Shown: positions 2,293 to 16,886 of the stretch, in pieces
Position numbering within the stretch: the stretch's first letter is position 1
How the letters are laid out: every line of letters starts with the position of its first letter
Assembly (NCBI GenBank): GCA_964057225.1
Contig: OZ059894.1
Coordinates: 16,058,001-16,122,000 of the forward strand
Length of the DNA: 64,000 bases
Origin: Auanema rhodensis
Taxonomy: Eukaryota > Animalia > Nematoda
Direction of reading: 5' to 3'
Position numbers and translations under genes: made by a program
Notes under the pieces: generated by a model
What the model was told of the DNA's origin: nothing
The model's input: the letters and a program-made list of their open reading frames with translations, nothing else
Database searches by the model: none

Positions 2293-5200
2293 CTAATAGT
2301 AAGTCTCTCTTTCGACCCATCCTCCTGGATAACGACGAATAAGGTAACGACGGATTTCGTCATAGATGAAGATGATGATGGAGAATGGAAGAGCACAGAA
2401 CCACCAGGAGAATCTATAAATACGTTGAAATTAATCCGAATATTCATTGAATTTATTTACCTGAGTCCATACATACGGAGACCGTTGTCAAGTCCAGGGC
2501 AGTAGCACATGAACCAGGCAAGAGCGGTTTCGAAGACAAGACCGAAGTTAAGAGTCCAGTTACCCATACCTTGTTGAACAAGGGAGTTTCTACGGGTCTT
2601 AGAGATGATCAAATCAGCCCATTGTACAACGACAATAGAAACGAAGTAGGCGGTTTGGCAGGTGTGTTCAAGGATCTTGCGGTTAGCGAAAGTCTAAAAT
2701 ACGAAGTTGAGATTAGAGCTTACAAATTAGACTGCTTACCCATTCTTGTCCGTAAGAGTCCTCGACGTTGTTGTAAGCACGGGAATCCCATTGAGAACGG
2801 ATTTGATAGAGGTCTTTGGGCCAGAATCCGTTATCAGCCATAATCCAGAAATAGGTGAAGAAACCAGCAGAAGCCTAGACATTAATTTTTGAATTTTAAT
2901 TCTGAAGTATATATTTCTTACCTGGATCATACCGATCTGACCATAAGCCAAAGAAATAAGACGTTCGTTTACAAGTTTGTCACGGACGGGGTCACGAGGT
3001 TGACGCTTCATGATGTCGGATTCAGCCTCTTCGTAAGCCAAGGAGATAGCAGGAACCATGTCAGTTCCGAGATCAATGCAGAGAATGGTGACAGTTCCGA
3101 GAGGAAGTGGAATACCGAAGAGCATGTAAGTCAAGAATGGAGAGATTTCGGGAATGTTGGAGGTGAGAGTGTAAGCGATGGATTTCTTGAGGTTATCGAA
3201 AATAAGACGTCCCTAAAATTTTCAAAATAAATTTTGTAAGTTTTAACGACAGAAACAAACCTCTTCGACTCCGACAACGATAGAAGCGAAGTTATCATCG
3301 AGAAGAATCATGTCAGCGGCTTGTTTAGAAACATCAGATCCAGCAATACCCATAGCAACTCCGATATCAGCCTTCTTGAGAGCAGGAGAGTCATTGACTC
3401 CATCTCCAGTTACGGCGACAATTTGTCCTTGAGCTTGGAAGGCTTCGACGATAACGAGCTTTTGTTGTGGGGAAGTACGGGCGAATACAATTTCTGAGTG
3501 GTGACGGATAACCTAAAATATAAGATTAGAAACGATTGTGTTTAAATTACTTACATTAGCTAATTGTTCTTCGTCCATCTCACGCAAGTCGGAACCGTGG
3601 ATAACGGCAGCCTTAGCTTCACGGGGGTCAACTTGATCAACTGGGATTCCTCTGCGGACAGCAATATCTTCGACAGTTTCAGTTCCCTCGCTGATAATTC
3701 CTACGGACTTGGCAATAGCTTTAGCGGTGATAGGGTGATCTCCGGTGACCATTACGACTTTAATTCCAGCAGAACGGCACTTAGCGACAGCATCAGGTAC
3801 AGCGGCACGTGGAGGGTCAATCATAGACATAAGACCAACAAAACGGAGACCCTTGAGTGGGAAGTTAACATCTTCAGTATCGAATTTGAATCCCTTGGGG
3901 AATTGGTCCTTTGGCAATTTGAAGTCGCAGAATCTATAAAGTTAGAAATTAGGTAAGTGAAAATGAGGCATAAGTGTACCCAAGTACACGTTCTCCCATT
4001 CCTCCGAGCTCAAGGTAGGCATCGTTGAATTCTTCACGTTTCTTCTCATCGAGCTGTTCTTCCTTTCCTTGGAGAAGGATGGTGGAGCAGACATCAAGAA
4101 TTCTCTCTGGGGCTCCCTTCATAACAAGAAGATACTCCTCCATGTCTGGGACGTCGTGGATAGAAACTTGGTATTTATTGGTAGAGTTGAATGGAATTTC
4201 AGCAATCTTAGGGTGCTTCTCACGAACAGCCATGATGTTACCCTAAAGTTCTTAAAATTAGTTAAACTGTGAATTAGCTTGATACCTGGGAAAGTTCAGT
4301 GAACTTAAGAAGAGCGATTTCAGAAGCATCTCCAGTACAGTCACGCTTAAGAACTGGGACGTCTTGTTGTCCTCCCTTGAACTCAGCTCTATTACAGAGG
4401 GAAGCAACGCGGAGAAGAGCGTTGAAGGTTTCTCCAGATTTCTTACCAGAGCTAGAGCTCTGGTTCTCAGTGGTGTCACATTCCTCGATCTTTTGGTCAT
4501 ACCACATGTGAGCGACAGTCATTCTGTTTTGGGTAAGAGTTCCGGTCTTATCAGAACAGATGGTAGAGGTAGATCCAAGAGTTTCTACAGCTTCTAAGTT
4601 CTTGACCAAGCAGTTCTTACTGGCCATTCTCTTGGCAGTGAGAGTCAAACAGACAGTTACAGTAGCAATCAATCCTTCGGGTACGTTGGCGACAATGATA
4701 CCGATGAGGAAAACAACAGCGGTAAGCCAGTGATATCCAAGAACGAAAGCAATGATGAAAAATGTAACTCCGAGGAAAACGGCTACTCCAGTGATGATAT
4801 GAATGAAGTGCTCGATTTCACGGGCGATGGGGGTCATTCCTGTGTCCAATCCAGAAGCCAAGTGAGCAATACGTCCCATAACCTATAGAAATTAACTGCT
4901 CAAAAGCCCTTTAAGATATTATCTTACAGTTCTGTCTCCAGTGAAAACGACGATACCCTTGCAGGTACCTTCGACAGCATTGGTAGAGAAGAAAGCAACA
5001 TTACGGGTCTCAAGTGGGTTGTCATTGGTGCAATCAGGGGAGCGACTCTGTGGTTCAGATTCTCCAGTCAAAGAAGAGTTATCGACCTTAAGATGAGACG
5101 TAGCGAAATCAGTCACACTTTTCCATTACCTTGAATCCGAAAGCAGAGATAACACGGATATCAGCTGGAACACGATCTCCACCCTTAACCTCGACGATAT

Positions 5201-5982
5201 CTCCAACAACAAGTTGTTCGGTGTGGATTTGCTTCTTCTGGCCATCACGGTAGACAAGTGCGAACTGAATTGGAAATATTGAACTAAGATGCTAAGCAAG
5301 GACAATAGTCTTACAGTGGGGACCATGTTCTTGAAGGAGTCCATGATTTTGCTAGACTTGCTTTCTTGGAAATATTGGAAACAACCAGTAATGATAACGA
5401 CACTCATAAGTACAATTCCCAGGTAGAGGTTATCCTTTGATGGGTATTCCATGGTGAAGCAATCGACACCGTAAGCGATGTAACATAAGATAGCTCCAAC
5501 CTGAAACATATTATGTTCACTTTATATAAATTTCATTTTTCAAACCCAGAGGAGCATGGCAAATCCTCCGAACAAGTTCTTACAGAACTTAACCCACTCT
5601 GGAGTAGTCTTTGGTGGGGACAAGGCATTAGGTCCATCTCTGTCAAGATGTTCCTGAGCCTTTTGAGTAGTCAGACCCTGAAAACAATGTCATCAGATTA
5701 TGATTAAAAGTTCTTCTGCTATACAGAAAGATAAGCATTTATTTGAATTATTGATTTTGAAAAATGATACTTTTATTGTATTAAAATCATAAAGATAATT
5801 TCACTTACAGTTTCGATATTGGTTCCATATCTGACTGCCAACTCATCCAGAGTGATCTTATGTTCGTCCTATAAACGAGAATAAGTCTTTGCATCAAAGA
5901 TAAAACATTTTCTGCATACCATTTGGACTTCCTGTTTCAATTCTTTCATATCATTTGACTTCGCTTCCTTGGTCTTCCCCAT
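2293..5982 (-). CDS. eat-6: Na+/K+-ATPase alpha subunit (multi-exon)
   Basis: Spliced translation starts [21 protein letters not shown]. It contains [15 protein letters not shown] (phospho-Asp), [27 protein letters not shown] and TGDGVND, and ends ...VERETYY-TAG (2293-2295). A TTTTCAG acceptor lies 7 nt before the ATG. Confidence 0.97.
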
Positions 5983-6847
5983 GTTTGACCTGAAAAATAA
6001 AATAATGTAAAAACAACATGGTTTTATCGAAAGCGAATATGAAGACTAGAAAATACGAGAACGAGGAAAATCATTAAATTCAACGAGTTGTTGGAAGATG
6101 TCTACATCCAAGTTTAGAAAAAGATGGCAGCGCAAGCGGTCGCGTCGCGACTTAGCTCTTCAAAGTCGAGCTGCTCATGAATGAAGTAAGCTCCAGTATC
6201 TCATGGAAACCTCAATCTAAACGTTGGATGCTTAGAAACATCGAGAGCGTTTCGTATATTAGAATCGATATAAGACAGAACAAGTCGAAAATCTTTCGCC
6301 GACATAAGGTGCTGATAGATGACACGGAAACTCCAGCTGCAACCTGGCGCAAAATCGATTACAACTTAGCCCACTCTCAAAGAAGCAACATTACAGCATG
6401 CAAACTTTCAAATTAATCTAAACGGATTCGGAATGCACTAGCTAAAGAATATGTTGGAAAATTTGGCCAATCCGTTTCAAACTTTACAACCTTTAGAAAC
6501 GTTTGCTCGCTGCTAGCGGAGTGCTAGCGCTTGCAACTTATTGGTAGGCAAAGGTACAACAGACGAATGGAGATATAAGCAGTAGGAAGCTTCGAACTAA
6601 TTTAGTTTGTTCAGCATCGAAAAGCTAAAAGATAAACAGAGGAAGGGGCGAAAGCAAAGAGAGTGAGGGAAAGTTCTGAGACGAAAAGGAGGAAGGACTA
6701 GGCGAAGGTGCTATTGACCGCGGCCTGGCAGCTAGATGTGAAAGGCATAGCATTCGCTTAAGAGACGCAGACGACAGAAAGCAAATGAATAGCGCAATCG
6801 ATAATAGCTGGGCTGCACCACTGCCACGAAGCACATAGAAAGATGAA

Positions 6848-13394: not shown

Positions 13395-16300
13395 TCAATA
13401 AATTCTATTGGATAGAATATGATTATCGGATTTCTTCGGTATTCTTTTCTGAAAATCCTTTGTGATTTCTTGAATTATTGGTAAATATAAATCCGTTGTT
13501 GCATTTAAACCGAAAACAAAATCTAAATGAGTGTATTTGAGCAGCTCAACACTTCCAACTATCGTATGATTCATTGACTTCAATATAGTTTCTCTGAAAT
13601 CAAAATATAAAACTATTCTAGTCAGCATTAATGAAAACCTGATATCATCCGTATCGGCTAATATGTCATCTTTGCTCCAATATATATAAGTAGGTGTAAC
13701 AATCTTTGTTAGATTGTATGTAGGAGGTGTACTCTAAAATATCATAACTGATAACCAACATATACCAATGTTGTAATACTACATTGAATCTTTGTATTAT
13801 AAAGCCTTTTCTCTAAAAAGGGTCAGGCCAACTTTTCAGCTCGGAAAGCCTGGGCTCGAGAAGGACGGAGAAGAATCGAAGAACTCGATTCAGGCACCTG
13901 TTGTCCTATACAAGCCTCTCTACTCCAAACTCTCTCTGAGAATGGATAGAAGTCTCATCATCCCCTTTGTCTAACGAACTTGCGCCGCACGGTCAACAGA
14001 TATGCACTTGCAGCGTATCTCTTACGGGTGCACAAGCATCAATAAAATAGAAAAAAGTTCACTGTCCTCTTAGTAGAACTACATCATGCAAATAGCAACT
14101 TCAAAACCAATTCGAAATTTTATAATACATACAGTTCTTAAAGGAACTGTAGCAAACAAAAACAAAAGCTATTTTATATTCAAAGGGTCAGGCCAACTTT
14201 TCAGCTTAGAAGGCCCGGGCTCGAGAAGGACGGAGAAGAATCGAAGAACTCGATTCAGGCACCTATTGTCCTATACAAGCTTCTCTACCCCAAACTCTCT
14301 CTGAGAATGGATAGAAGTCTCATCATTCCCATTGTCTATAAATGGAATGCCAATCTGCGACTACTTATCCAGTTGCAATGTATCTGATATGAGTGTTGCA
14401 ATAATTTTGAAACAATTTTGAAACGTTTTAATGCTATGAAAGTTCTAAAAGAGTTATTTCTCATCTATTTTTGTTCTTTCTGATCGAACACTACAGGAAA
14501 AACAATCAATGCGGTCAATAAATCATTTTGCAGGTGAATCACGTGCCCTAGCATTCTGTGTCTCCTTCACAATTTTATTATCAAAGGGTCAGGCCAACTT
14601 TTCAGCTTAGAAGGCCCGGGCTCGAGAAGGACGGAGAAGAATCGAAGAACTCGATTCAGGCACCTATTGTCCTATACAAGCTTCTCTACCCCAAACTCTC
14701 TCTGAGAATGGATAGAAGTCTCATCATTCCCATTGTCTATAAATGGAATGCCAATCTGCGACTACTTATCCAGTTGCAATGTATCTGATATGAGTGTTGC
14801 AATAATTTTGAAACAATTTTGAAACGTTTTAATGCTATGAAAGTTCTAAAAGAGTTATTTCTCATCTATTTTTGTTCTTTCTGATCGAACACTACAGGAA
14901 AAACAATCAATGCGGTCAATAAATCATTTTGCAGGTGAATCACGTGCCCTAGCATTCTGTGTCTCCTTCACAATTTTATTATCAAAGGGTCAGGCCAACT
15001 TTTCAGCTTGAAAAGCCTGGGCTCAAGAAGGACGGAGAAGAATCGAAGAACTCGATTCAGGCACCTATTGTCCTATACAAGCTTCTCTACCCCAAACTCT
15101 CTCTGAGAATGGATAGAAGTCTCATCATTCCCATTGTCTATAAATGGAATGCCAATCTGCGACTACTTATCCAGTTGCAAGGTATCTGATATGAGTGTTG
15201 CAATAATTTTGAAACAATTTTGAAACGTTTCAATGCTATCAAAGTTCTAAAAGAGTTATTTCTCATCTATTTTTGTTCTTTCTGATCGAACACTACAGGA
15301 AAAACAACCCACGTGGGCAACGTGAGTCACGTAGACCAGTATTTTCTCCTTGAAATCTTAATACGGTTGTGTTTTTTCGTGAGTAAATTATATACAGATA
15401 TCAAATGTTTCGAAAGATTCGAACTAGTTTTAGTATACAAAGAAATCTAGTTACTGTACCTGTCCATATGCTCTTCTGTTTGATTCTTCATTTCCGTAGT
15501 CAAATTTTTGAAGTTTTTGGCTTTTAACCAACTTAAAATAAAATTTTTAATAGTTTAATGAAGTAATTCTAAGATATTACCTGTACCCAATGCAGAAGAT
15601 CTTTAGTTGAAGTTGCTGCAGGCATGTGACACATGTATACACCAACTCTTGTCTAATTCATAAATATATATCATACTCATATAATATATAATAATTACCA
15701 TATTAAACTGTGTTTCTTTGCCATCTACAATTCCAATATCAAGTGTGCATATATTTTGTCCAATCGGTAAACTAAATAAATAATTAATCTAAACTTGCAA
15801 CCATCGATGATGCTAAACCTGCAGAGAGTACTTATAATTTTCTGCAAAAATTTTGGAAACATCAAGGGTGAATTTGGAACACGAGATAATATAATCTATA
15901 ATATATTATTATATCTAAATAATAAATAATCTCATTTTTTACTTTTACAAAATCGATTAAACGCGATCCTAAGTACTTGAACAGTCCTCCAATATGTGAA
16001 ACTGTTGCTACAGGGGCAAGAGCATGAAATTGTCGAATCTATAAAGTATCAAAACATATTTGTGGTTAGAAAATAATAAAGAAGACCTTTTTTCCAAATT
16101 CAGGTTCATCAGCTAGTTTAGCAAACATTATAACTGTTCCTTGTGAATGTCCTATATAGTAAAGACTTTCCTTAATATTTTTGTTTATTATTTTCTAATA
16201 AAGTTTATTAAAATCTTACTTCACCTGTTTCCCGTAAGACATAATCAATACTTGATGATAAATCATATTGAGACATATCTTGCCATCTGAAAAAAACTTC

Positions 16301-16886
16301 TTTTTACCAAGAAACTTCTATGGTACTAAACGTAAAGTTCCAAAATCGTTCGTCATCTGGACCAAATCCTACATGTTTTTGGGAAGCTGGAGTTCCGCGA
16401 GAGTTTCCAATCCAAACATCAAAACCATGATCAGCGAACACTGTACCTAAACAGTATGAGGGTTCAAATAGAAAAATACATATAAGATGTCAATAACCTG
16501 CAGACTGTGAGGGTAAATTGGCTAAATAGTTATAAGAATCAGAGAACAGGCCATGTTGCATGAATACGACAGGTTTAATTGAGTTTGAAGATTCTGAGTA
16601 TTAGATCGACATACATATAATATTTAAAATAACACAATACCATTCTTTTTTCCTGTTATTCTATGTAATTCCAGAATAAAATCATCTTCTGTACGAACAA
16701 TGTGAGATTCTGAAGAATATCCGAAAAAGCGAGCAATTTCGGGCTACAAAATAGGAAATTCAAGAAAAATATACGTTAACATACCACTGTCATATAACAT
16801 TCTGGATCAAGAGTTGCTTTTACATATTCGGAAAAAATTAATAAAATCGATAAAACAGGATAAAATTTGAAATTTAGGAAGATCAT
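13395..16886 (-). CDS. Lysosomal acid lipase-like (lipl family)
   Basis: Signal peptide MIFLNFKFYPVLSILLIFSEYVKA, then DPECYMTV, ILELHRI and nucleophile elbow YYIGHSQG. Catalytic Asp region WSKDDILAD and His region YTHLDFVFG. A 1.7-kb intron (~13735-15460) carries the repeat/ncRNA array. Confidence 0.93.
13817..13972 (-). ncRNA. Candidate box C/D-type small RNA, copy 1 (PSE-driven)
   Basis: Minus strand reads AAAGGG-G-AUGAUGA (C box 13955-13961) ... CUGA (D box 13823-13826)-CCCUUU, a perfect 6-bp terminal stem. Internal hairpins include GAAUCGA/UCGAUUC. A PSE-like motif lies upstream. Confidence 0.7.
14001..14030 (-). promoter_or_regulatory. snRNA-type proximal sequence element (PSE/UM1-like); further copies at 14366-14395, 14767-14796 and 15168-15197
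   Basis: Minus strand CACCCGTAAGAGATACGCTGCAAGTGCATA versus CACTCATATCAGATACATTGCAACTGGATA in copies 2-3. The block is conserved exactly 27 nt from the RNA's conserved 5' end while the spacer is not. ACCCG-N5-N6-CTGC matches the spacing of the C. elegans PSE (ACCCG-N5-TGTCGG-CTGC, recalled). Confidence 0.65.
14181..14337 (-). ncRNA. Candidate box C/D-type small RNA, copy 2
   Basis: CAAUGGG-A-AUGAUGA...CUGA-CCCUUUG terminal stem; paralog of 13817-13972. Confidence 0.65.
14582..14738 (-). ncRNA. Candidate box C/D-type small RNA, copy 3
   Basis: Identical to copy 2. Confidence 0.65.
14983..15139 (-). ncRNA. Candidate box C/D-type small RNA, copy 4
   Basis: As copy 2, with a few substitutions, some shared with copy 1. 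Confidence 0.65.

Follow-up and report, generated by a model that had tools for sequence, protein, structure and literature searches.

Four predicted PSE-driven box C/D snoRNA genes without an identifiable target in a putative acid-lipase intron of Auanema rhodensis

The locus, its copies and the host intron

Within the window (the whole 64-kb stretch of Auanema rhodensis DNA that was analysed) we found four minus-strand copies of an RNA element of ~156 nt, one of them diverged and three contained within a 401-bp tandem array. Copy 1 was placed at 13817..13972 by its sequence, by a BLAST homology boundary (13973-13817), by its fold and by a partial match to the model of the C. elegans C/D snoRNA sn2417 (13853-13967); its predicted +1 is A13972, its box C lies at 13961-13955 and its box D at 13826-13823, and a terminal stem accompanies the two boxes. 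Copies 2, 3 and 4 (14182..14337, 14583..14738 and 14984..15139, respectively) were delimited by BLAST homology to copy 1 and are carried by the array, which TRF called at 14171-15307 as a 401-bp repeat of 2.8 copies with 98% matches. TRF and BLAST together bear out the initial annotation, which had described a 401-bp satellite and four minus-strand RNA copies. The GC content is 48% in the RNA, ~39% in the array and 21–30% in the flanks.

A BLAST search of the 181-Mb assembly with copy 1 returned the four copies at the locus, with identities of 100, 95, 94 and 94%, and no fifth copy elsewhere in the genome. A looser genome-wide pattern, combining box C with a conserved 10-mer, gave two further matches where ~0.5 would be expected by chance; these have neither a PSE nor a C/D architecture and were dismissed as chance matches. 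A metagenome scan with the conserved 5′ motif of the RNA was blank. Because there are just four copies genome-wide, all of them here, the locus is a single-locus gene family and a dispersed repeat is excluded, which settles an earlier concern that the unit might belong to a dispersed transposon family.

The array lies in what we infer to be an intron of an acid-lipase gene (13734..15459, minus strand; 1726 nt, GT...AG, phase 0), the boundaries of which were drawn from the sequence and the reading frame; a neighbouring intron of the same gene is ~50 nt long. The upstream exon (15460..15531, minus strand, 24 codons) was placed by frame continuity with its flanking exons and had no match of its own in a PDB sequence search, and the downstream exon (13639..13733, minus strand) matched residues 302-328 of lysosomal acid lipase weakly (E 0.79). 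A further exon at 16307-16441 on the minus strand matched residues 79-125 of gastric and lysosomal acid lipases in the PDB sequence search (E 6e-8); Pfam gave no match to single short lipase exons. These exon matches, together with the frame across the GT...AG boundaries, uphold the lipase-intron setting proposed in the initial annotation. The RNA copies are in sense orientation relative to the host gene, and the 3′ end of copy 1 lies 83 nt before the 3′ splice site, a distance near the optimum for vertebrate intronic C/D snoRNAs.

Upstream elements, start sites and paralogue footprint

All four copies are preceded by a 30-bp block, 22/30 positions of which are identical between copy 1 and copies 2–4; the block is too short for BLAST alignment. 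We located the U1, U2, U5, SL1, U3, U6 and U4 genes of the same genome with Rfam models and then read their upstream regions, all of which carry a bipartite element composed of ACCCATA, three variable bases and A-ATACGG. A PWM was trained on 15 non-redundant upstream elements of the U1, U2, U4, U5, U6, SL1 and U3 genes, none of them from the locus, and was scanned across the 127,950 positions of the window, both strands included. The four minus-strand blocks proved to be its four best matches, with 25.6 bits for copy 1 (14001..14030, the top of all positions), 20.8 bits for copy 4 (15168..15197) and 18.0 bits for both copy 2 (14366..14395) and copy 3 (14767..14796); the blocks of copies 2–4 were also recovered by a pattern match. 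The next best position scored 11.5 bits, with a background of -26.9 ± 9.1 bits and training elements of 18.2–31.4 bits, which places the blocks among real PSEs, those of copies 2–4 at the low end. The PSEB of copies 2–4 is weaker (TACAT or TACCT) than that of copy 1 (TACGC; consensus TACGG), and because of this poorer PSEB in the other copies, copy 1 may be the strongest gene of the four.

Counted from the predicted start (A13972, A14337, A14738 and A15139), the TAC core has its T at -45 in every copy. The same T lies at -43 to -48, with a mode of -45, in the Pol II genes of this genome (U1, U2, U3, U4, U5 and SL1) and at -53 in U6, 8 bp further upstream than in the Pol II-type genes; in this species the difference could serve to tell Pol III from Pol II PSE genes. 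The initial annotation had proposed that the copies are autonomous genes, each with a PSE of the snRNA type at a set distance, and had suggested looking for the motif before the species' own snRNA genes: it does precede U1, U2, U4, U5, SL1 and U3, at the same distance, and the PWM scores and the -45 spacing support the proposal itself.

The same features bear on the choice of polymerase. A small RNA gene of the Pol III type, such as those of U6 and the stem-bulge RNAs, with a PSE plus a proximal element as its promoter, would fit with the PSE, which nematode U6 genes also have, and with the T5 run that follows copy 1, but the run is just T3 after copies 2–4, a reading of the sequence between PSE and +1 revealed no TATA-like element in the four copies, nor any GTATA-like element at -25 to -30, and the PSE stands at the spacing of the Pol II genes rather than that of U6. 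The absent TATA-like element and the T3 after copies 2–4 therefore disfavour Pol III, which we consider very improbable here. The four blocks have what is seen in nematode PSE (UM1) Pol II small-RNA genes, namely a PSE matching that of the species' snRNA genes and a fixed distance to the start with neither a TATA element nor a T-run terminator, though copy 1 has its T5. PSE/UM1 loci of C. elegans that lack a TATA produce capped Pol II transcripts; of 32 predicted ncRNAs of this type, 28, C/D snoRNAs included, are TMG-capped (PMC2527325, PMC2200864). By analogy with this precedent, and because the copies have no TATA, a Pol II-type spacing and mostly T3 ends, we infer transcription by Pol II and a capped product.

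Comparison of the copy 1 unit with the array unit by BLAST gave one significant HSP (13973-13817 against 14338-14182, 94%), and beyond it only 8-mer noise. The boundary of this homology falls 1 nt ahead of the +1 that the PSE spacing predicts. The block ends 27 nt before the boundary in 4/4 copies (28 nt before +1), and the spacer between block and +1 is ~32% identical, i.e. random, yet exactly equal in length across copy 1 and the array. Both observations had been made in the initial annotation, which reported that copy 1 is unrelated to copies 2–4 outside the RNA and the 30-bp block and that the block stands exactly 27 nt upstream in every copy, and both held on re-analysis. Copy 1 and the array unit are thus old paralogues that retain only the PSE, the distance from PSE to start and the RNA; such retention amid randomised flanks is what selection on a self-contained transcription unit leaves behind. 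Promoter capture was considered separately, by comparing the unit flanks with all fetched snRNA loci; this yielded a single 40-bp match of 80% identity, distant from any PSE, and the idea was rejected.

These results also weigh on the possibility that the RNA is an intron-processed snoRNA, spliced out of the lipase pre-mRNA and trimmed by exonucleases, with the PSE-like blocks having no role. The sense orientation within the intron and the position of the copy 1 end relative to the 3′ splice site are what such a route would need. Splicing-dependent intronic snoRNAs, however, occur singly within an intron and have no promoter of their own, whereas four copies share one intron here, the blocks are the four best PWM matches in 64 kb and stand at the exact Pol II snRNA spacing, and they are conserved between flanks that are otherwise unalignable; a tissue-restricted lipase would also seem an odd host for a housekeeping RNA. 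We therefore think it distinctly unlikely that intron processing is the mode of expression. For autonomously transcribed copies, release from the intron is a possible second route, because of the sense orientation and the 83 nt between copy 1 and the splice site.

RNA architecture, family resemblance and target search

The motif AUGAUGA starts 12 nt from the predicted 5′ end in every copy, so that 11 nt precede box C, and every copy has a CUGA directly followed by the 3′ strand of the terminal stem, with the 3′ end of the RNA just beyond. The stem measures 6–7 bp in all four copies and is built of GGG/CCC and A-U pairs. An RUGAUGA box, a CUGA box and a short terminal stem, the features by which box C/D snoRNAs are recognised, are present in all four copies, and we read them as the canonical box C/D arrangement; the AUGAUGA, CUGA and terminal stem ascribed to each element in the initial annotation were seen in 4/4 copies.

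A single-sequence fold of the RNA gave -54.3 kcal/mol (z -2.2) and three internal hairpins; in this MFE fold part of box D is paired into an internal hairpin rather than into a K-turn, which counts against the gene model. Where substitutions among the four copies fall in predicted paired columns, 4/4 keep the pair, being transitions to or from G-U, and the remaining substitutions fall in unpaired columns. Double-sided covariation is unobtainable from four copies so similar.

None of the Rfam families, snoRNA families such as U3, U8, U13 and U14 included, has a covariance-model match at gathering score at the RNA locus. Across the whole window, the only matches at gathering score were three to the H/ACA family ceN81, away from the RNA locus. 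These ceN81-like copies lie on the minus strand at 44340-44467, 44881-45008 and 46876-47003 with 51.8–52.5 bits (gathering score 50), and no PSE-type PWM match was found near them.

The only suggestive Rfam match of the RNA is to RF01222, the C. elegans C/D snoRNA sn2417, with 22.5 bits for copy 1 (cut-off 80), corresponding to E 0.067 over a 1.7-kb region and E 0.0068 over the RNA alone. Copies 2–4 score 16–16.5 bits with this model, and genome-wide copy 1 is its best match (E 1.7). At a permissive setting (E <= 10) the search added just three archaeal C/D families, at E 0.9 or more. The Rfam search suggested in the initial annotation thus returned no family at threshold and a weak but specific resemblance to sn2417. 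After box C the two RNAs share a 10-nt run letter for letter; in both it serves as the 5′ strand of a hairpin, with GAG and GGA closing the other side. Both also have an internal hairpin with a shared loop and a different stem, and a similar sequence just before box D. In contrast to sn2417, the RNA described here is ~33 nt longer, apparently owing to an extra hairpin of ~30 nt before box D. On this comparison we lean towards true homology between the two. We have not filed the RNA under RF01222 because all copies fall below the family's own threshold of 80 bits. Nothing on sn2417 came up in the literature, whether sought by its name or by its sequence. If the link is real, the first hairpin and one internal loop would be the parts conserved over a long distance.

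A second known RNA, CeR-2 (CeN21), is a U8-like C. elegans snoRNA with a PSE at ~-32 to -69, a TMG cap and no rRNA complementarity >10 bp (PMC2943600). It resembles the present RNA in its box C/D features, its few copies and its structured body (PMC2943600), and differs from it upstream of box C, where CeR-2 has a stem-loop and a 5′ segment pairing with 26S and the present RNA has 11 nt. Identity with CeR-2 was rejected on this architecture, the 5′ domain being absent here, and no pairing of such a domain with the 5′ end of LSU rRNA, as expected of a CeR-2/U8-like RNA, was found; CeR-2 may nevertheless be regarded as a functional analogue. The U3 genes of the same genome share with the locus a PSE, its spacing and a tandem array (371-bp unit), and differ from it in their >40 copies, compared with four, and in sequence, the present RNA showing no U3 sequence, no box A/B/C′ similarity and no Rfam U3 match.

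Possible targets were sought in one complete rDNA unit (18S, 5.8S, LSU and spacers) and in the U1, U2, U4, U5, U6, SL1 and U3 RNAs of the same genome. The rDNA unit used (L049, G000:C8:10976800-10984300) contains 18S at 751-2504, 5.8S at 2802-2952 and LSU at 3160-6646; the unit measures 6567 bp and is tandemly repeated on contig C8, with the SL1 genes outside it. Between the RNA and the rDNA unit there were 1–2 matches of 12-mers with at most one non-Watson-Crick position, compared with 2.2 in shuffles, and between the RNA and the snRNAs five uninterrupted duplexes of >=9 bp in which one G-U was tolerated, compared with 3.4. The best RNAduplex energy against the rDNA unit was -41.1 kcal/mol, where dinucleotide shuffles gave -44.1 ± 2.4 kcal/mol and 91% of them were at least as good. 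A single 12-mer match to LSU was set aside as chance, since it has a central mismatch and is worse for the sn2417 consensus. No antisense element of >=10 nt to rRNA or snRNA was found next to D or D′, and with respect to the rDNA unit, U1, U2, U4, U5, U6, SL1 and U3 the RNA is an orphan. The initial annotation had suggested an orphan or a new class: its orphan status stands, complementarity to this set not exceeding chance, and a new class is unlikely in view of the C. elegans precedent and the resemblance to sn2417. The would-be guide segment on the D′ side is paired within the conserved first hairpin, and a non-guide role is therefore weakly favoured.

An RNA that finds no target, in an array whose copies are young (98% identical), might also be a silent satellite or a set of decaying pseudogenes of a snoRNA gene functional elsewhere. 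There is no other copy in the genome to serve as that gene, old paralogues with randomised flanks have both kept the RNA and the PSE, and substitutions have spared the base pairs, all of which makes us give such a reading very little credence.

Gene model and genomic setting

We consider it likely that the locus comprises four autonomous PSE-driven genes within the lipase intron, each independently transcribed and all encoding one box C/D snoRNA of ~156 nt without an identifiable target. In this predicted gene model, the PSE, with its centre near -45, would be occupied by SNAPc, and RNA polymerase II, brought in by SNAPc, would initiate at the A that follows the first base of the block by 58 bp. 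The 5′ end of the transcript would be retained, probably under a trimethylguanosine cap, and folding would bring box C and box D together beside the 6–7 bp terminal stem, an arrangement on which the core C/D proteins would be expected to assemble. Most of the body of the RNA consists of hairpins, and it carries no recognisable antisense element; the RNA is for this reason an orphan, either a guide for a target beyond those searched or a non-guide, processing or chaperone-type snoRNA. A more specific proposal, which we put forward only tentatively and ourselves rather doubt, is that it is not a methylation guide but a lineage-restricted, capped and highly structured C/D snoRNA with a part in the processing or folding of pre-rRNA; functionally it would stand beside U8, U22 or CeR-2, and tandem duplication would be raising its dosage. 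The locus itself would have grown by an old duplication, separating copy 1 from the ancestor of copies 2–4, followed by a recent tandem triplication of the 401-bp unit.

The layout of such a gene is already known. In C. elegans the PSE/UM1 precedes 54 ncRNA loci, 11 of them snoRNAs (PMC2527325), seven C/D snoRNAs are TMG-capped (PMC2200864), and UM1 loci in introns reach expression far above that of their hosts and independent of it (PMC1474057), so that PSE-driven, TMG-capped, intronic C/D snoRNAs are documented there (PMC2527325, PMC2200864, PMC1474057, PMC2943600) and the novelty implied by the initial annotation does not hold. The present genes share with the C. elegans PSE/UM1 C/D snoRNAs, such as U3 and several CeN RNAs, a TATA-less PSE ~45–60 bp upstream and an intronic position, which in C. 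elegans is often combined with independence of the host; they differ from them in matching none at the Rfam threshold and in forming a small tandem array. Neither a new kind of gene nor a new mechanism is revealed. With this locus a nematode genome gains one snoRNA gene that is well delimited and probably functional. The locus also offers a clean case of paralogue footprinting, the promoter box, the exact start distance and the RNA being all that two old copies have in common, and provides an empirical PSE matrix and spacing rule for the species by which Pol II-type genes are separated from U6-type genes.

Tandem arrangement is general among PSE-driven genes in this genome. Every class that we looked up (U1, U2, U3, U4, U5, U6 and SL1) forms long head-to-tail arrays, with units of 727 bp for U1, ~2.46 kb for U2, 371 bp for U3, ~472–490 bp for U4, ~366–371 bp for U5, 226 bp for U6 and 252/504 bp for SL1; the arrays of snRNA, SL1 and U3 genes lie on contigs C1, C3, C4, C5 and C8 (loci L005-L046 and L057-L086), with at least 40–50 copies per class. 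The three-unit array at the lipase locus is a small instance of this habit, in keeping with the tandem amplification envisaged in the initial annotation.

Several minor observations were made in the course of these comparisons. In the U6 array (L067) a TATGTAAG-like stretch comes after the PSE, near -30. Alongside the arrays there are a few variant copies of snRNA, SL1 and U3 genes that lie dispersed, and U1 in particular occurs as two variants, dispersed copies and copies of the 727-bp array (seen on comparing L005-L009 with L010-L016, contigs C3 and C7), which differ in the first stem and in the flanks of the PSE (CACCC vs AAACCC). At the lipase locus, a CACGTG (E-box-like) palindrome is found at window positions 14946-14941, 14545-14540 and 15315-15310; copy 1 has none, and for copies 2–4 the palindrome sits ~176–208 bp upstream of the predicted starts, a distance within the range where C. 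elegans UM1 promoters require additional upstream sequence.
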